Shown piece after piece: positions 3,986 through 63,534 of a stretch of 64,000 nt of DNA (position 1 is its first letter; each line of letters begins with the position of its first letter). The notes under the pieces are model-generated. The model was not told where the DNA came from, did no database searches, and saw only the letters and a program-made list of their open reading frames with translations. The DNA lies in IMG/VR virus record IMGVR_UViG_3300021137_000001, positions 248,001-312,000 of that record; one strand, 5' to 3'. The position numbers and the translations under genes were made by a program.

Positions 3986-4002
3986 AAAATATTTCCACCT
4001 AA

Positions 4003-55191: not shown

Positions 55192-55497
55192 TTATAATCC
55201 TAATGCTGCGGTAATAGTTGCTTTTTTAGGAATATATATTGTTGTTCCCGGAACAAAATCAAATACTGGATCTTGTATTGTATTTGGATTACGCATGGCA
55301 AATACCCACCATAATGCACTATCACCATATAAGTCAAATGATAGCAGGTCTGGACGATATTTGTATATTGCGTCAATTTGATATACTACATCAGCCGGAT
55401 CAGCTGGAATATCCCTAAATGTTGTAATATCTAAAAAGAAACTGTAAGTCGATGTATCTGAATATGGACTAGTTTTACTGTATGTTACTGCGGCCAT
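55192..55497 (-). CDS. baseplate wedge gp53/LysM-like protein
   Basis: YRPDLLSFDLYGDSALWWVFA.RN ... PGTTIYIP. Confidence 0.85.
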   Translation of the reverse strand: MAAVTYSKTSPYSDTSTYSFFLDITTFRDIPADPADVVYQIDAIYKYRPDLLSFDLYGDSALWWVFAMRNPNTIQDPVFDFVPGTTIYIPKKATITAALGL

Positions 55498-56699
55498 TAT
55501 AGGAATCCTCCATAACCCAAATCTTTATCTTGTAGCAATCTACCTGCAGCAAACGAGTCAAGATTGAATCTATCATGCAGATTTTTACGACTGTATACTG
55601 GTTTTAATGTAATCGATATTGTACTTGTTGCAGGAACACGAGTCGATGTTGTTACTGATTTATATGCTGTTTTTGTTTTGTTTGCAACACTCATAGGAGT
55701 TTCGGGTGTAACTAATGATTCTGTTAACGTTGCTGTAGTAACTGGAATTTCTATATAATCTACCTCGTTAGGCAAAGTATGCGAAAAGTTACTAATTACA
55801 CACGGAATATGTGGGAAATAATGACTACCGTATCCATCTAAGAATACAATTGGTGGTGGGTTACCTGCATTAGCACCTTGTCCAAAAAACATTTTAGTGG
55901 CCGATCTAAAAAAGTATATTGCAGCAAGCAAGTATTTGCCCTCATCAATACCTTGAACTGTAAATTCACCAGAAATAGTAATATCGCTTACTTCACTGTT
56001 ATTATAGAATTGTTGCGGATAGTTACTATGAGTTGGAGTTGCTGGAGTGTAGTTTGCTACATGCGAAGTAGTAATGCTTGGTGTATAAGGGAAAATTACA
56101 CCGTTAGTATCTTTAAGTGGTGCCATAAGACTATTTGGATTAGGGCCAGTTTCTTTATAAAATATAGTCGACAGATCAGCTAAACTTATGCGAACTCTCC
56201 AATCATCGGATGCACCGGAGCTATCTCCTCCGGTTTGAGTTTGAAATGCAACTTGTGGTGCTGTCTTGGCATCACTTGCAGCTCCGCCATCCTTAAGTCC
56301 TGAAATTGCTTTACGTGCATCTGTTGATTCGTATGAGCCTGCATCTTTTGATGGATCATATCCGCCGTTAACTGATTCTTCTTGTCCGGGAATATATCCA
56401 CCACGTGTATCATATGTTCCAGCTAATGCACTGCCAGTTGTATAATCCTGACTAATTGCAGCCTGGCCGCCAATTGAATCAGTTCCTGTTAAATATGCAC
56501 TCGGGTTACTTGCATTGTATCCGCCACCACTACTTAATGCTTGCGCACCGTTATATCCGCCGGCAAAACTTGGCGCATACGCACCGGTATAGTTTTGCGG
56601 AGCATAAGGGTCGTAGCCACCATTGGTAGAATCAACTTGTCCGGGCACGTAACCACCTCTATTATCAAATATAGGTGCGTCTGTAGGATTTAGAGCCAT
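55497..56699 (-). CDS. tail tube initiator / baseplate-tube protein (gp48/gp54-like) with GGY-rich N-terminal extension
   Basis: GVIFPYTP.I, HSNY....Y, PPIVFL.GYG, PCVI.NFS..LP..VDYI; position next to LysM gene. Confidence 0.6.
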   Translation of the reverse strand: MALNPTDAPIFDNRGGYVPGQVDSTNGGYDPYAPQNYTGAYAPSFAGGYNGAQALSSGGGYNASNPSAYLTGTDSIGGQAAISQDYTTGSALAGTYDTRGGYIPGQEESVNGGYDPSKDAGSYESTDARKAISGLKDGGAASDAKTAPQVAFQTQTGGDSSGASDDWRVRISLADLSTIFYKETGPNPNSLMAPLKDTNGVIFPYTPSITTSHVANYTPATPTHSNYPQQFYNNSEVSDITISGEFTVQGIDEGKYLLAAIYFFRSATKMFFGQGANAGNPPPIVFLDGYGSHYFPHIPCVISNFSHTLPNEVDYIEIPVTTATLTESLVTPETPMSVANKTKTAYKSVTTSTRVPATSTISITLKPVYSRKNLHDRFNLDSFAAGRLLQDKDLGYGGFL

Positions 56700-56720
56700 A
56701 GTAAAACCTCTGTTATAGTG

Positions 56721-56726
56721 TATTTA
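56721..56726 (-). promoter_or_regulatory. late promoter TAAATA heading the structural operon
   Basis: TAAATA-CAC-TATAAC-AGAGG upstream of ATG 56699. Confidence 0.7.
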
Positions 56727-56771
56727 TTGTCGGAGAAATAGTAGCAGTTAAAGAATAACCAGATAAATAGG

Positions 56772-56800
56772 TTGTATAGCGCAATACTATATGTTATAAT
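56772..56800 (+). promoter_or_regulatory. sigma70-type promoter with extended -10
   Basis: TTGTAT (56772-77), 17-bp spacer, TG-n-TATAAT (56795-800). Confidence 0.75.
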
Positions 56801-56821
56801 AATTAAAAGGAATCTATTCAC

Positions 56822-56857
56822 ATCATAATAAGTAAAGTAAATTACCTAAATAGATAA
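56822..56857 (+). pseudogene. remnant 5' end of the gp55-like gene (..ISKVNYLNR*)
   Basis: Encodes KVNYLN, matching RVNYLN at the start of 57561; follows an orphan AAGGA. Confidence 0.6.
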
Positions 56858-56879
56858 ATATATAAAAGGTAATATAAAT

Positions 56880-57557
56880 ATGACAACTTATTATGTATAT
56901 GCATATATTCGTAGCAAAACTTCGCTAACTGCTAGCATCGGCACCCCGTATTATATAGGTAAAGGAATAGGGCAACGTGCGTTTACTAAACATAATTGTC
57001 CAGTTCCGATAGATAAAACAAATATTTTGTTTATTAAAGAAAATTTAACAGAAATTGACGCACATTTATTAGAAATACAGCTCATAGAACAATATGGGAG
57101 AAAAGATTTAGGCAACGGAATATTACATAATCAAACGAATGGCGGAGAAGGCATAAGCAATCCATCTAGCACTACTAGAGAAAAAATGGCGGCTGCTAAA
57201 AGAAATGAATCCGCTGATACTAGATTAAAACGATCAATTGCAGCAAAGAATAGAATCCGCACACCACTTAGCGATGAAACAAAACGTAAGATTAGCGAGG
57301 CTAATACAGGTAAAAAAAGAACAGACGATGCTAAATTAAAGCAGTCGGTTGCTAAGAAAGGTAGAACGTGGGAAGATATTTTTGGTATCGAAGAGGCAGC
57401 TAGAAGAAGGGATATACTTGCAAGTGACGAAGTTAAGTTAAAAATGAGTATAGCTGCGTGTAACAGAAGTGACGAAGGTGCCGCCAATATAGCTGAAGCA
57501 AATAGGAAAATTGGTATATTAAGAAAAGAAGCAAATAACAAATTAAAGGGTGTATAA
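56880..57557 (+). CDS. GIY-YIG homing endonuclease with NUMOD3-like repeats
   Basis: YYVYAY...PYYIGKG..R, E..LI..YGRKD, N.TNGGEG; SDETKRKIS repeats. Confidence 0.88.
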   Translation: MTTYYVYAYIRSKTSLTASIGTPYYIGKGIGQRAFTKHNCPVPIDKTNILFIKENLTEIDAHLLEIQLIEQYGRKDLGNGILHNQTNGGEGISNPSSTTREKMAAAKRNESADTRLKRSIAAKNRIRTPLSDETKRKISEANTGKKRTDDAKLKQSVAKKGRTWEDIFGIEEAARRRDILASDEVKLKMSIAACNRSDEGAANIAEANRKIGILRKEANNKLKGV

Positions 57558-57560
57558 TAT

Positions 57561-58460
57561 ATGGCAAGACGTGTGAACTATTTGAATAATAAAGACATTT
57601 TAAAAGAAATCGCTAAAAGTAAATTAACATATTGTAGTTTCATTAATAAAGATGTAACTATGTACGATGCTATTGTATTAAACGTAAGTGCAATTACTAA
57701 AAAATCCGTAGCAGAAGCCAGAGCAACAAGAGCAACAAGGCTTGCTAAAGAAGCACAAGAAGCTGAATTATTGCTCGGTAACAAACGCAAGTTAGATGAA
57801 TTTGCAATCCCAGTAGAAAATATCCCAGTAACAGACATTGTATTCCGTGTTATGACATGGGAACATATACCAATCGACGAAGTTAAACAGAAAAAATCCG
57901 ACGCTAAAGCACAAGAAGCGTACGACGAAGATTTGTTCGAAACTGAATACGATGAGCCTGCACCAGTTGTTAAAGTCAAAGGTGCTGTTAAGTACGTTAA
58001 ACTAAACTTTCCTCCTTTCTTTCATTATTCAGTAACCGAAGACTTAACTCCAATTGTTGTTGGTAAGAGTCACTGGAAAGGCGACTTTGAAACTGGCGGT
58101 TTTGTTAAAGATCATGGTAGCATGACGGCTAAGTTAGCTCATATGTTTGTTAAACTATGTGAACGCTATGCTACACGTAGTAACTGGCGTGGTTATACAT
58201 ACAATGACGAGATGCGTAGCCAAGCATTACTTCAATTAAGTCAAATTGGGCTACAGTTTGACGAAAGTAAATCAGACAATCCATTTGCTTATTATACAGC
58301 CGCAATTACAAACAGCTTTACTCGTGTATTAAACATCGAAAAGCGCAATCAAAATATTCGTGATGACATTTTAGAGATGAACAACTACGCACCAAGCTAT
58401 ACTCGACAGAATCAAGGCGGTAACTGGGGCGGTGGTGGTGGACACGGAGCCGACGAATAA
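57561..58460 (+). CDS. 55: late-transcription sigma factor, T4 gp55-like
   Basis: VNYLNNKD.L, NWRGYTY.DEM, FDESKSDNPFAYYT...NSF.R....EK; synteny with gp47/gp46. Confidence 0.9.
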   Translation: MARRVNYLNNKDILKEIAKSKLTYCSFINKDVTMYDAIVLNVSAITKKSVAEARATRATRLAKEAQEAELLLGNKRKLDEFAIPVENIPVTDIVFRVMTWEHIPIDEVKQKKSDAKAQEAYDEDLFETEYDEPAPVVKVKGAVKYVKLNFPPFFHYSVTEDLTPIVVGKSHWKGDFETGGFVKDHGSMTAKLAHMFVKLCERYATRSNWRGYTYNDEMRSQALLQLSQIGLQFDESKSDNPFAYYTAAITNSFTRVLNIEKRNQNIRDDILEMNNYAPSYTRQNQGGNWGGGGGHGADE

Positions 58461-58473
58461 CCGCAAATTATTT

Positions 58474-58525
58474 TATCTGCCAGTCGCCCATAACTAAATA
58501 CATTTACAGGGGATTGGCAGATATG
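58474..58525 (+). promoter_or_regulatory. late promoter inside SD/ATG-sequestering hairpin
   Basis: TATCTGCCAGTC-g-CCC pairs with GGG-GATTGGCAGATA; TAAATA at 58495-500 in the loop; ATG at 58523. Confidence 0.8.
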
Positions 58526-59185
58526 AAATACAAAAAAGATTACTATGGTTATGTATATGAATGGATAAATTCCACTAATAATATGAAATATATCGGATCG
58601 CATTACGGAGCAGTCGATGATTATTATAAAGGATCCGGCAAAGATTTTATGGTAGCATATAAAAATAACCCACAACACTTTACTATGAGAGTATTAGAAT
58701 ATGTTTCTGAAAACAATAAAAAATTAGTATTAGAAACAGAAAAAAAATGGCTTGATACAGTAGTAAATATTAAAGATGATCCAACATATTATAATCTCAA
58801 TAATGATGCGACAGGCGGATTTGGGTATTTAGATGAATCTCATATCGTTAAACGAGCAGAAACATTAAAGAAGAAACACGCTATCCACGGATTAAGTACC
58901 GAAGAAATACAATCATATAAGCAAAAAATACAAACCAGACTCGATAGAATAGCAACTACTGGGTTTACCGATAAAGAAAAAGAACAACATGCAAAATACG
59001 GAATTAAATTACAAGTCACCTTACCCTCAGGAGAAGTACGAATATATAATTCCATCGGGGCTGCCGAACGTGAGTTAAAACTTAACATTAAGTATGGATT
59101 AAAAATATGTGCCAAAAAACTTGACTTCAAAGGGTACATTCTAGTAAAATTAAATGAACCACTAATCGATTGTAGGAAAAAATGA
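58523..59185 (+). CDS. GIY-YIG (Seg-like) homing endonuclease
   Basis: GYVYEW.N..N.MKYIGSH, Y.GSG, E..WL, YYNLNN.A.GG; start moved to ATG 58523. Confidence 0.85.
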   Translation: MKYKKDYYGYVYEWINSTNNMKYIGSHYGAVDDYYKGSGKDFMVAYKNNPQHFTMRVLEYVSENNKKLVLETEKKWLDTVVNIKDDPTYYNLNNDATGGFGYLDESHIVKRAETLKKKHAIHGLSTEEIQSYKQKIQTRLDRIATTGFTDKEKEQHAKYGIKLQVTLPSGEVRIYNSIGAAERELKLNIKYGLKICAKKLDFKGYILVKLNEPLIDCRKK

Positions 59186-60195
59186 ATTTATTCAAAAAAG
59201 CTGCGGTATTTACAGATTTACATCTAGGACTAAAGTCAAATAGTACACAACATAATGAAGATTGCCTTGCGTACATTAAATGGTTTATTAGTAATGCAAA
59301 AAAAGAAGGGTGCGATGTTTGCTTTTTTCTTGGAGACTATCATAATAATCGAGCGGCAATTAATGTAGTCACGTTAAACTATAGCCTAACAGCGTTAGAG
59401 TTGTTGGGCAAAGCGTTTGACCGTGTTATCTTTATTCCGGGCAATCATGATTTATATTATCGTGACAAGCGTGATATACAATCTGCACAATGGGCAAAGC
59501 ATATTCCAAACATTGAGATTATTAATGATTTCTATCAAGAGGGTGATGTAAGCATTGTTCCGTGGCTAGTAGGAGATGATCATAAAAAGATACAAAAGAT
59601 CAATGCAAAGTATATGTTCGGGCACTTTGAGTTACCGGGCTATTATATGAATGCAATGGTGCAAATGCCAGAGCACGGTGAGATTAGACGTGAGGATTTT
59701 GGGCATATTGATCATGTGTACAGTGGGCATTTTCATAAACGTCAAACAGGTAAGAATATTACATATATTGGCAATGCGTTTCCACATAATTATGCAGATG
59801 CAGGTGATGATGAACGTGGTATGATGATACTTAACTGGGGAGAAGAGCCAACGTTTCATGCATGGCCTGATCAACCCAAGTATCGTGTATACACACTAAG
59901 CGACATTTTGCAAACTCCAGATACGTTGTTACAAAAAGGTATGCACTGTCGAGTAAACATCGACGTGGATATTTCATATGAAGAAGCAACATTTATTAAA
60001 GAAACTTTTGTAGGTACATATAATTTGCGTGAGCTTACATTAATTCCAGTAAAGCACACTGATATCGGCACAGATATTATGCTAGGCAATATTCAATTCG
60101 AAAGTATTGATACAATCGTGACAAGTCAACTAACAGCTATCAACAGTGAGCATTATAATCCAGCATTGTTATTAGACATCTATAGGAATTTATAA
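59182..60195 (+). CDS. 47: recombination endonuclease subunit, gp47/Mre11/SbcD-like
   Basis: DLH, GD, GNHD, GHFE, GHFH metallophosphoesterase motifs. Confidence 0.93.
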   Translation: MNLFKKAAVFTDLHLGLKSNSTQHNEDCLAYIKWFISNAKKEGCDVCFFLGDYHNNRAAINVVTLNYSLTALELLGKAFDRVIFIPGNHDLYYRDKRDIQSAQWAKHIPNIEIINDFYQEGDVSIVPWLVGDDHKKIQKINAKYMFGHFELPGYYMNAMVQMPEHGEIRREDFGHIDHVYSGHFHKRQTGKNITYIGNAFPHNYADAGDDERGMMILNWGEEPTFHAWPDQPKYRVYTLSDILQTPDTLLQKGMHCRVNIDVDISYEEATFIKETFVGTYNLRELTLIPVKHTDIGTDIMLGNIQFESIDTIVTSQLTAINSEHYNPALLLDIYRNL

Positions 60196-62873: not shown

Positions 62874-62958
62874 ATGCTGACATTTTGAATAAATAGTAGT
62901 GTAGTTCGCGGGTGTAGGAACCCCAACTACTCTAACATTGTAAAGGAATGTCAGCATG
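62874..62958 (+). promoter_or_regulatory. structured leader: 11-bp outer stem, late promoter and inner hairpin
   Basis: ATGCTGACATT (62874-84) is the reverse complement of AATGTCAGCAT (62947-57); TAAATA 62890-95; GTAGTT..GGGT/ACCC..AACTAC 62901-30. Confidence 0.8.
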
Positions 62959-63534
62959 AATATTTATTACGTATACCAGTACCTTAGAGAAAAGGATTCG
63001 TCTACTGCTCTAGCAGGTACACCATACTATATAGGAAAAGGTAAGAACAACCGAGCATATATAGGACACAATAATAGAATACCTTCAAATAAAGAATATA
63101 TTCAAATTATTAAAGATAATTTAACTGAACAAGAAGCAATGGACCTTGAAATTATGCTAATTAAAAAATATGGTCGTAAAGATTTAGTAACAGGTATTTT
63201 AATAAATCTTTCAAACGGCGGCGAAGGAGCAAGCGGATCTGTTCGTTCGCAAGAGCACAAGACACGTATATCTCAAGCACAAACAGGAAAAATTGTTTCA
63301 GATTCAACAAGAGAAAAATTAAGTAAGGCATTATCAGGTAAAAAACGATCAGATATTGCTAAGTTTAATATTAGCAAAGCACACATAGGTCAAGTTCCTT
63401 GGAATAAAAACATACAAATGACAGAAGAGTGGAAGGCAAAACGCCCTTGGCATAGTTGTGATATTTGTGGTATTCAATCCCAAAACCTTACTAATATTAA
63501 AAGATTTCACAATAGCAATTGTAAAAATAAATAG
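62956..63534 (+). CDS. GIY-YIG homing endonuclease with NUMOD3-like repeats (same subfamily as 56880)
   Basis: YYVYQY...PYYIGKG..R, KYGRKD...GIL.N.SNGGEG; C-terminal CDIC..HNSNC. Confidence 0.88.
   Translation: MNIYYVYQYLREKDSSTALAGTPYYIGKGKNNRAYIGHNNRIPSNKEYIQIIKDNLTEQEAMDLEIMLIKKYGRKDLVTGILINLSNGGEGASGSVRSQEHKTRISQAQTGKIVSDSTREKLSKALSGKKRSDIAKFNISKAHIGQVPWNKNIQMTEEWKAKRPWHSCDICGIQSQNLTNIKRFHNSNCKNK

Follow-up and report, generated by a model that had tools for sequence, protein, structure and literature searches.

A mobile GIY-YIG endonuclease cassette inside the late sigma factor gene of a freshwater jumbo phage probably carries a replacement gene start

We analyzed a 64,000-nt stretch of DNA, called here the window, which spans positions 248001 to 312000 of virus record IMGVR_UViG_3300021137_000001, one contig of 329,321 bp with 37% G+C. 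The source is a freshwater jumbo phage, assembled from metagenomes, and the element under study is a homing endonuclease gene (HEG) next to the gene for a late sigma factor, a homologue of gp55. We conclude, with a probability of about 0.8, that this HEG belongs to a mobile, free-standing, Seg-like cassette which sits after gp55 codon 8 and carries a fossil of a gp55 start, a late-promoter motif, the HEG itself and a replacement gp55 start. The locus comprises the following features (SD, Shine-Dalgarno sequence).

56772 to 56777, plus strand: weak -35 element TTGTAT, 17-nt spacer, 3/6 match to the consensus
56795 to 56800, plus strand: -10 element TATAAT of the putative resident gp55 promoter, the same in HEG-less L002
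56805 to 56812, plus strand: orphan gp55 SD AAAAGGAA, resident, identical to the SD of L002
56822 to 56853, plus strand: dead gp55 start, fossil of codons 1 to 8 (ATC, then ATA ATA AGT AAA GTA AAT TAC CTA AAT A)
56841 to 56847 and 56867 to 56873, plus strand: ATTACCT and its complement AGGTAAT, which overlaps the HEG SD
56846 to 56852, plus strand: CTAAATA, straddling the end of the remnant
56854 to 56860, plus strand: late-promoter-like ATAAATA of the HEG, 19 nt before the HEG ATG; its TAA closes the remnant frame
56880 to 57557, plus strand: HEG of 225 amino acids, GIY-YIG plus NUMOD3, free-standing, Seg-like (PF07460, phrog_314)
57545 to 57550, plus strand: cassette-borne gp55 SD AAAGGG, inside the final HEG codons (K-L-K-G)
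57561 to 57584, plus strand: replacement gp55 codons 1 to 8 (M A R R V N Y L), cassette-borne and recoded compared to both the remnant and HEG-less alleles, with a K-to-R change
57561 to 58460, plus strand: intact late sigma factor gene, gp55 homologue of 299 amino acids (phrog_12791, E 4e-79)

A sequence-only reading of this DNA had placed a GIY-YIG gene inside the 5' end of gp55, behind an orphan SD, and had described the upstream remnant as a synonymous variant of the live start. All of these elements were found at the places given, and four of the five VNYLN codons are indeed synonymous variants between the remnant frame, ATC ATA ATA AGT AAA GTA AAT TAC CTA AAT AGA TAA (56822 to 56857), and the live start at 57561, ATG GCA AGA CGT GTG AAC TAT TTG AAT AAT. 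The sigma-70 promoter that it had seen before the remnant held in part: TATAAT is present, but the -35 element matches the consensus at only 3/6 positions, which is why a consensus promoter scan of the genome did not list a promoter at 56795. The 329,321-bp genome, translated in all six frames, contains VNYLN only three times, two of them at the gp55 locus.

No near-identical isolate phage was found when the locus was compared by megablast with 50,697 phage records, and the closest isolate gp55 proteins, those of Sinorhizobium, PA5oct-like and RaK2-like jumbo phages, are only 38 to 44% identical. In the absence of close isolates at the DNA level, all comparisons rest on metagenomic contigs, whose loci are designated here by L numbers. 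Lake and sediment runs dated 2012 to 2022 contained DNA near-identical to the window. When viral contigs were scanned with gp55, the order of a virion structural protein gene (minus strand), gp55 (plus) and gp47 (plus) proved to be kept in about 80 loci, and the structural gene is the left neighbour of gp55 in all relatives.

We then compared the window with relatives that lack the HEG. The gap from the start of the structural gene to gp55, measured in loci with sufficient flank, was 52 to 147 nt in about 70 HEG-less loci, apart from a single locus at 266 nt, and held no open reading frame (ORF) in any of them; in the window it is 861 nt. The nearest HEG-less relative, L002, has a gp55 that is 98% identical in amino acids and 94.9% in nucleotides over 780 nt (94.7% over the body segment), and the last 300 nt of its left flank are almost identical to the window. 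There, the 17-nt sequence AAAAGGAATCTATTCAC, the same as in the window, runs straight into gp55, ATG GCA CGT AAA GTC AAC TAT TTA AAT AAT, and the window ATC at 56822 occupies the exact place of this ATG. The upstream SD is of resident origin. Using the regular expression [NK]Y[LF][NT], we found a copy 642 to 741 nt upstream of the live one in 18 of 19 HEG-positive records; L179 was missed by the expression and by eye shows a shorter relic, TAC TTA AAT. The 1.1 kb upstream of gp55 in 75 HEG-less loci yielded two NYLN-like chance matches at unrelated distances and none at a comparable position. HEG-less relatives thus have one gp55 start, where the window has its dead one, and the arrangement that would contradict an insertion, namely, an upstream KVNYLN together with a separate start, was absent from them.

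These data also reject a chance occurrence of the upstream KVNYLN in AT-rich intergenic DNA, to which we give next to no probability. The local peptide score of the remnant is borderline, as it only equals the best of 60 random 230-nt genomic segments, and taken alone would be compatible with chance. However, the remnant is positionally homologous to the HEG-less start and lies behind an identical SD, it recurs in all HEG-positive loci versus 2/75 off-position matches in HEG-less ones, and its residues follow those of resident starts. The decisive evidence against chance is thus comparative and not the peptide score.

HEG homologues were gathered by viral and metagenome scans and by protein search. 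About 80 HEG protein clusters, at about 55% identity or more, came from freshwater metagenomes of 2012 to 2022; all 13 of the close homologues (same identity range) that were looked up lie between the structural gene and gp55, and distant family members (47% identity or less) occupy other sites that do not adjoin gp55. In 14 of 14 distinct HEG-positive loci, a gp55-start relic lies 5' of the HEG and ends at or near TAY YTN AAT (A), its residues following known resident types (RKV, RH, KH). On the 3' side of the HEG, the same 14 loci have an SD that lies within the final HEG codons or directly past them, then a start codon and codons 1 to 8 in frame to NNKDILKEI, the HEG either ending 3 nt before the gp55 start or overlapping it out of frame. 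The gp55 start is duplicated around the HEG and the insertion site is fixed, after gp55 codon 8 (nt 25), in all 14. A homologous SD, AAATTAA(A/G)(A/G)GG, closes the HEG in the window, L082, L173 and L091. N-terminal duplication as a general trait of HEGs was considered and rejected: duplication of the N terminus of the downstream gene was not above the null at the genome's other tested HEGs, and among 25 testable metagenomic loci of the wider HEG family it was found only at the gp55-linked ones, so that it is specific to the gp55-site clade.

GIY-YIG HEGs are often intron encoded and the upstream copy retains its ATG and SD in L082 and L090, as might be expected if the HEG lay in an intact or decayed group I intron with the upstream KVNYLN as gp55 exon 1. 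We regard this as very improbable. Every locus has, directly before codon 9, a second start that is complete and has an SD of its own, and the upstream start is dead in the window, L170, L175, L177 and L091. Furthermore, the HEG ORF stands by itself, complete with start and stop codons, and leaves about 28 nt of insert (about 25 plus 3) outside it, which offers no space for an intron core, and an Rfam search of 56600 to 59300 gave no match at E of 1 or less.

We next considered where the live gp55 start comes from. The window, L170 (HEG positive) and L002 are near-isogenic and have nearly identical flanks. Compared to L002, the two HEG-positive loci differ at seven positions within gp55 nt 1 to 24 (positions 7, 9 to 12, 15 and 24) and at none in nt 25 to 80 (binomial p 3.7e-4), and all seven differences are common to the window and L170, so that they form a short tract resembling co-conversion. 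The bodies of the three gp55 genes are about equally distant (4 to 5% of nucleotides), and the HEGs of the window and L170 are 97% identical. The closest gp55 pair is L170 and L002 (95.7% nucleotide identity), which have a TAGAAG promoter indel in common; a contig from a 2020 lake run has this indel together with the HEG.

The cassettes fall into three types by their C-terminal module, each with a gp55 start of its own that does not depend on the gp55 lineage. Type i, which occurs in unrelated gp55 lineages, has AGA/CGY CGY GTN AAY TAT TTG (R-R-V), the nearest HEG-less kin having ATG AGA AAG GTN AAT TAT CTW (R-K-V). Type ii has ATT CGN AAA RTT AAY TAT TTR behind GGAGAATCAAA and is found in four lineages whose relatives use ATG AGA AAG or ATG AAA AGA. 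Type iii has GTG AAA TCA (GTG-K-S). Recoding is therefore partly nonsynonymous and can change the type of start codon. The leucine codon is TTR in 9/13 live copies, compared to 2/12 remnants and 14/72 HEG-less alleles (Fisher p 7e-4). The mismatch cluster in the near-isogenic loci and the recurrence of cassette-type starts in unrelated lineages strongly support the earlier proposal that the cassette brought a replacement gp55 5' end, and this end travels with the cassette.

As a separate observation, ATT seems to be the start codon of many gp55 genes in this phage group (AGGAGA-N6-ATT AAA CAY AAY TAY), among them those of L016, L021, L025, L027, L030, L031, L040, L049 and L050 (near position 4001), L175 (at 2191), and L177, L180 and L181. 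In L025 a stop codon lies two codons 5' of the ATT, so that no canonical start is available. A noncanonical start on a late sigma gene suggests translational control of gp55.

The upstream remnant travels with the cassette as well. The window fossil, ATCATAATAAGTAAAGTAAATTACCTAAATAGATAAATA, recurs in L175 (1444 to 1482) with one change (38/39 nt) and in L177 with two, behind different resident SDs, and the 39-nt element is present in the window, L170, L175 and L177. In L175 the gp55 start is present three times, live in one copy and dead in the other two.

1416 to 1438: resident remnant of L175 with intact SD and ATG, cut off at AAC TAT TT
1444 to 1482: fossil of L175, behind this second, fresher resident remnant
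2191: live gp55 start of L175, ATT

The dead start of the window had been taken for the old start of the gene. It is a dead gp55 copy but not the window genome's own abandoned start, since the same 39 nt stand in L175 and L177; it is a fossil carried within the cassette. The HEGs of the window and L175 have a synonymous divergence (dS) of about 1.0 over the first 150 codons, and the 38/39 identity of the fossil exceeds the 78% overall coding identity (p 7e-4). Near-identity of the fossil next to almost saturated synonymous sites indicates a constrained noncoding element and not decaying debris. Its reuse as regulatory DNA, which the sequence-only reading had put forward, is plausible given that conservation of the fossil is far above that of neutral sites. 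An extension of the remnant past AAT A was rejected: local alignment of the HEG 5' untranslated regions (UTRs) with gp55 nt 25 to 72, which asked whether the HEG promoter and SD derive from gp55 codons 9 to 17, gave p values against shuffles of 0.04 to 0.85 and no consistent signal.

To assess mobility, we compared the tree of the catalytic half of the HEG with that of gp55. The two conflict at supported nodes. L172 and L178 are gp55 sisters (100/100), but the L172 HEG groups with those of the window and L170 and the L178 HEG falls in another clade (99/97), so that two cassette types occur within one tight gp55 lineage. The gp55 genes of L179 and L181 pair together at a distance from the rest (99/98), with HEGs that nest among the other HEGs. 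Each HEG-positive locus has HEG-less loci as its nearest relatives, and the distribution of the HEG is sporadic and incongruent with the gp55 tree. Lake metagenomes that yielded HEG-positive variants also contained HEG-less relatives, whose gp55 starts are seen there as loose ends, making mixed infections plausible.

Alternatively, the arrangement might be old and vertically inherited, the HEG being rarely or no longer mobile, with codons that drifted and HEG-less genomes such as L002 arising by loss, through recombination between diverged start copies or with HEG-less phages; divergence of the repeats would then preserve the HEG. The divergence of the HEGs (61 to 72% amino acid identity) is of the same order as that of gp55 among HEG-positive loci, the synonymous variants lie inside the natural range, and the L002 5' end resembles a hybrid of resident and cassette codons, all of which would fit such a history. 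We nevertheless consider it improbable in view of the conflicting trees and the two cassette types of L172 and L178, the same fossil in different backgrounds, the nested remnants of L175, and the HEG-less nearest relatives of each HEG-positive locus. Moreover, the HEG ORFs are intact with ratios of nonsynonymous to synonymous substitution (dN/dS) of 0.1 to 0.26, which points to purifying selection, and the catalytic residues are all invariant. The hybrid itself (L002, 4001 to 4030) joins resident-type codons, ATG GCA CGT AAA GT, to cassette-type ones, C AAC TAT TTA AAT AAT; this is the trace expected of HEG loss, or of break repair from the live copy without gain of the HEG, and the informative sites are too few to tell these apart.

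The identity of the enzyme rests on several lines of evidence. NUMOD3 (PF07460) scored above the Pfam cut-off in the HEG product and again in relatives, and the product matched PHROG 314, "homing endonuclease," with an E value of 3e-15. Tyrosines Y7 and Y9 (YVYAY), YYIGKG at 24 to 29, R33, E65 and N84 are invariant in 43 homologues. A profile of these 43 sequences had GIY-YIG proteins as its best matches in the PDB, aligned through the hallmark motifs at a weak E value of 0.018, and a three-sequence profile gave only an irrelevant match among solved structures. An AlphaFold2 model of the product reached a mean confidence (pLDDT) of 86, and its residues 1 to 84 matched the GIY-YIG folds of PD-T4-3 (Z 7.0; root mean square deviation 2.6 A over 71 residues), the UvrC N-domain (Z 5.0) and R.Eco29kI (Z 3.0). 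An N-terminal nuclease domain followed by NUMOD-type DNA-binding modules is the architecture of I-TevI and the Seg proteins, and annotated phage homologues are labelled Seg-like or intron-associated endonucleases. The family is thus a divergent Seg-like branch of the GIY-YIG endonucleases.

In an alignment of 14 cassettes, the gp55-site endonucleases share one homologous catalytic/NUMOD3 half joined to one of three unrelated C-terminal modules, one of which is a zinc-finger-like tail (CxxC...WHFxKCK). The C-terminal type does not follow the tree of the catalytic domain, and the enzymes are therefore mosaics.

Several points weigh against the mobile-cassette reading or parts of it. Pfam PF01541 was not significant, as only the L091 protein matched it, with an E value of 0.96 and 10.2 bits versus a cut-off of 22.6; the structural Z values are moderate and the Foldseek E values weak. 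The synonymous variants are within the natural range of HEG-less alleles, L031 and L041, for example, already having AAC TAT TTG. The codon statistics are phylogenetically nonindependent, because only about three cassette lineages exist; common descent could thus be enough to account for the "recoding," with no need for selection for resistance. The near-isogenic pair does not tell which way the change went, as L002 may have lost the HEG instead of the window and L170 having gained it. Three different C-terminal DNA-binding modules are found at one site and partly have one fossil in common, which is awkward for a role of the fossil as a protein operator. Finally, the cut site and the basis of immunity are putative.

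We then examined the signals in front of the HEG. Of 126 copies of ATAAATA in the genome, 47% lie 5 to 60 nt upstream of the start of a same-strand ORF, compared to 8 to 11% for the control heptamers GTAAATA and TTAAATA and 22% for CTAAATA. The distance from ATAAATA to the start is bimodal genome-wide, with modes at about 5 nt and at 18 to 24 nt, and the 19 nt of the HEG fit the latter. An exact ATAAATA lies 2 or 6 to 7 nt past the remnant in 12/14 HEG-positive loci; the motif reads GTAAATA in L172, and in L179 a sigma-70-like promoter takes its place. On this motif evidence, the ATAAATA at 56854 to 56860 is the better-supported candidate for a late promoter. The sequence-only reading had assigned this role to CTAAATA, which is present at 56846 to 56852 but is surpassed by the conserved, correctly spaced ATAAATA and may be a weaker twin promoter. 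A neighbouring HEG, at 58523, has CTAAATA where its L082 equivalent has ATAAATA.

In L091, L178 and L182, ATAAATA lies about 5 nt before the HEG start, placing these cassettes in a leaderless-like class. Genome-wide, the 5-nt spacing is seen in at least 16 genes, where it leaves no room for an SD, and the 18- to 24-nt spacing in genes with an SD; the short spacing suggests leaderless late mRNAs. Examples of ATAAATA copies are those at window positions 56721 to 56727 (minus strand) and genome positions 64707, 119171, 133572 and 323517.

Why the fossil is constrained admits more than one answer. It could serve as a protein operator, compatible with the mobile-cassette model, to which the enzyme would bind over its own late promoter and so repress the HEG without cutting. 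The remnant is half of the presumed homing site and ends just before ATAAATA in those 12 loci, the fossil is conserved while HEG synonymous sites are near saturation, and I-TevI provides a precedent (PMC2988022). We hold this role to be doubtful, however, as the window and L175/L177 have the same fossil but unrelated C-terminal modules, which are presumed to bind DNA.

Alternatively, the remnant might silence the HEG in RNA on early read-through transcripts, from which late transcripts starting after ATAAATA would escape, either by pairing of AAUUACCU with the SD region or, where the old ATG survives, through an out-of-frame upstream ORF. The sequence-only reading had proposed ATTACCT as an anti-SD arm, and the 7-bp ATTACCT/AGGTAAT helix (56841 to 56873), with ATAAATA in its loop, is indeed the predicted minimum free energy structure of this region. 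At -5.5 kcal/mol (z -0.7), however, it is weak, 42 of 200 shuffles folding as well, and RNAalifold over ten loci gave no consensus hairpin in the HEG 5' UTR. The expected partners can pair in 87.9% of cells (9 distinct sequences) versus 38 to 56% in slid registers, but column composition explains most of this, since 31 of 500 shuffles reach the observed value. The leaderless-type cassettes L091, L178 and L182 have no SD to sequester. In L082, L173, L180, L090 and L178, the old ATG is still intact, and the ORF that begins there extends across the HEG start in a different frame; such an ORF could silence the HEG as the helix would. The T4-type hairpin of the neighbouring HEG at 58523 and the T4 precedent (PMC2988022) also speak for control in RNA. 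Taken together, we view silencing in RNA as possible but unlikely, much like the operator.

For the mobile cassette, we propose the following course. The enzyme would cut gp55 alleles that lack the HEG at or close to the invariant coding stretch NYLNNKDILKEI, which is the only well-conserved DNA to the right of the hypervariable N-terminal part of the structural gene and the variable spacer. Repair of the break from a co-infecting HEG-positive genome would copy the cassette, with the gp55 body as the right homology arm and the fossil or the SD region as the left one. Immunity of the HEG-positive allele would follow from the splitting of its old site and from codon changes in the restored one (AAR to CGY, CTN to TTR), which also has a new upstream context. 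The layout probably originated when an HEG located upstream of a donor gp55 SD was introduced into a genome whose left flank had diverged too far to pair, leaving the recipient's own gp55 start behind, and L175 would show such an event repeated. Since late transcription requires gp55 to be present beforehand, its translation would have to rely on read-through transcripts of the resident promoter. This promoter would thus read through the HEG to reach gp55, whereas the HEG would be made mainly from its own late promoter, adding late transcription of both genes. One metatranscriptome contig covers 56703 to 56966; it is undirected and possibly DNA derived, and hence shows neither a transcript start nor read-through.

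A bolder version, for which we would offer somewhat less than even odds, is that the locus is a natural "home-and-rescue" drive: an HEG family with at least three types of DNA-binding module would target the invariant first codons of gp55 and, by supplying a recoded, uncuttable start, would avoid both cutting itself and harming the host gene, with the fossil as a selected cis element. The fossil would then act as an operator or decoy for the enzyme, as an RNA silencer, and/or as the sole left homology arm beside a hypervariable flank, and nested fossils such as those of L175 would record successive invasions.

Introns and inteins are, to our knowledge, the known ways for an HEG to occupy the conserved coding sequence that it targets; a spare gene start would be a third. 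In synthetic cleave-and-rescue or home-and-rescue drives, a nuclease directed against an essential gene is linked to a recoded, cleavage-resistant copy of that gene. The phage locus resembles them in having a nuclease on an essential target and a recoded, presumably uncuttable substitute; it differs in being natural, in using a protein endonuclease, and in replacing only the first eight codons, with a resistance that is putative. A literature search turned up no phage or 5'-end precedent, but its coverage was incomplete, so that this is absence of evidence only.

The closest known counterpart of the phage cassette is the mobile ORF element (mORF) of fungal mitochondria, of which the phage case is the mirror image. 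mORFs replace the C terminus of a gene, as in atp6 of Allomyces macrogynus and in atp6, atp9 (GIY-YIG), cox2 and nad3 of Glomus (PMC3630166). As in the phage, an endonuclease gene lies inside a conserved coding sequence and brings a foreign version of the gene end that it displaces, the native end stays alongside, downstream in the case of the mORF, as an unused duplicate that differs mostly synonymously, and the element moves between lineages and makes hybrid genes (PMC3630166). A duplicate on both sides of the HEG was found in all HEG-positive loci, the type of the live copy tracking the cassette and not the gp55 lineage. In contrast to the mORFs, however, the phage cassette replaces the 5' end (start codon, SD and eight codons) instead of the 3' end, its host is a phage and not an organelle, its duplicate is only about 25 nt long, and its HEG is a separate ORF, whereas the mORF reading frame is often in phase with the host gene. 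The displaced phage copy is also carried along and constrained, and nested fossils record successive events.

The free-standing Seg (GIY-YIG) and Mob (HNH) endonucleases of T4-like phages likewise lie beside essential conserved genes, are sporadic among close relatives, and have signals of the downstream host gene embedded in the HEG and a late-promoter motif before it (PMC2988022). They sit between genes or split a gene into two polypeptides, however, and are not described as duplicating or replacing the start of a neighbour (PMC2988022), whereas the phage cassette inserts within a reading frame and the gene is kept whole by the substitute that it carries. HEGs that split genes, such as mobE in nrdA of phage Aeh1 and mobA in T4 gene 60/39, also lie within a once-continuous essential gene without an intron or intein (PMC2988022). 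There, both pieces are translated and reassemble, but in gp55 the eight-codon upstream piece, often startless, is discarded and replaced. In control of the I-TevI type, a late promoter lies within or past a hairpin that sequesters the ribosome-binding site, and the I-TevI operator has 15/20 identity to the homing site and overlaps a late promoter (PMC2988022). Similarly, the phage HEG has a late-promoter motif just 5' of it with homing-site-like sequence abutting; I-TevI is intron encoded, however, and the hairpin of the gp55-site HEG is weak and not conserved. The full hairpin arrangement of I-TevI is seen at the neighbouring HEG at 58523.

If the mobile-cassette reading holds, a selfish element can overwrite the start of an essential regulator, including its SD, its type of start codon (ATG or ATT) and even an amino acid, and annotators can meet several dead starts before one gene. 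This abundant family would offer a natural, testable model of the recoded-rescue logic of synthetic gene drives, and the data set provides matched variants of the site, putatively sensitive, resistant and fossil, for cleavage assays. These findings bear on homing endonucleases, on phage genome evolution and on gene-drive design.

The genes flanking the locus comprise the following features.

55497 to 56699, minus strand: virion structural protein gene, divergent (phrog_12050, E 2.7e-51)
56721 to 56727, minus strand: late-promoter-like ATAAATA of the structural gene, 21 nt before its ATG, conserved across all relatives
58523 to 59185, plus strand: second Seg-like HEG, between gp55 and gp47
from 59182, plus strand: gp47/SbcD-like nuclease gene, 3' neighbour of the second HEG

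The second HEG stands in place of the usual gp47 promoter spacer and ends with a stop codon that overlaps the gp47 ATG. A hairpin at 58474 to 58523 (-22.9 kcal/mol, z -5.6) holds CTAAATA (58494 to 58500) in its loop and the SD in its 3' arm, the classic T4 arrangement of late promoter and ribosome-binding-site hairpin, and the equivalent hairpin and HEG of L082 (2561 to 3274) gave -23.6 kcal/mol (z -7.2). The spacer between gp55 and gp47 contains inserts of 0.7 to 1.3 kb in about 18 of 80 relatives, marking it as an insertion hot spot. A gp47-start remnant before the second HEG was looked for and rejected, as the upstream DNA aligns as the start of a normal gp55-gp47 spacer. The genome contains at least 12 HEG-like ORFs, including paralogues of the GIY-YIG family at 39 to 51% identity; examples lie at 62956 to 63534 of the window and at genome positions 68496 to 70108, 71469 to 72173, 85003 to 85659, 158298 to 158963 and 239338 to 240015.

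The N-terminal third of the structural protein (window 55497 to 56400 and relatives) is hypervariable and rich in glycine and tyrosine, and the corresponding DNA has 20 to 40 mismatches per 50 nt even among the window, L170 and L002, whose final 300 nt before the gp55 spacer are nearly identical. Within the spacer, 56736 to 56760 represents a decayed version, matching at 20/24 positions, of the -10/SD block found directly 5' of gp55 in L005 to L008. It is followed in the window, L002 to L004 and L170 by an insert of about 52 nt that holds an ATAAATA (56763 to 56769), TATAAT and a fresh SD, indicating that the gp55 initiation region had been replaced once already before the HEG arrived.

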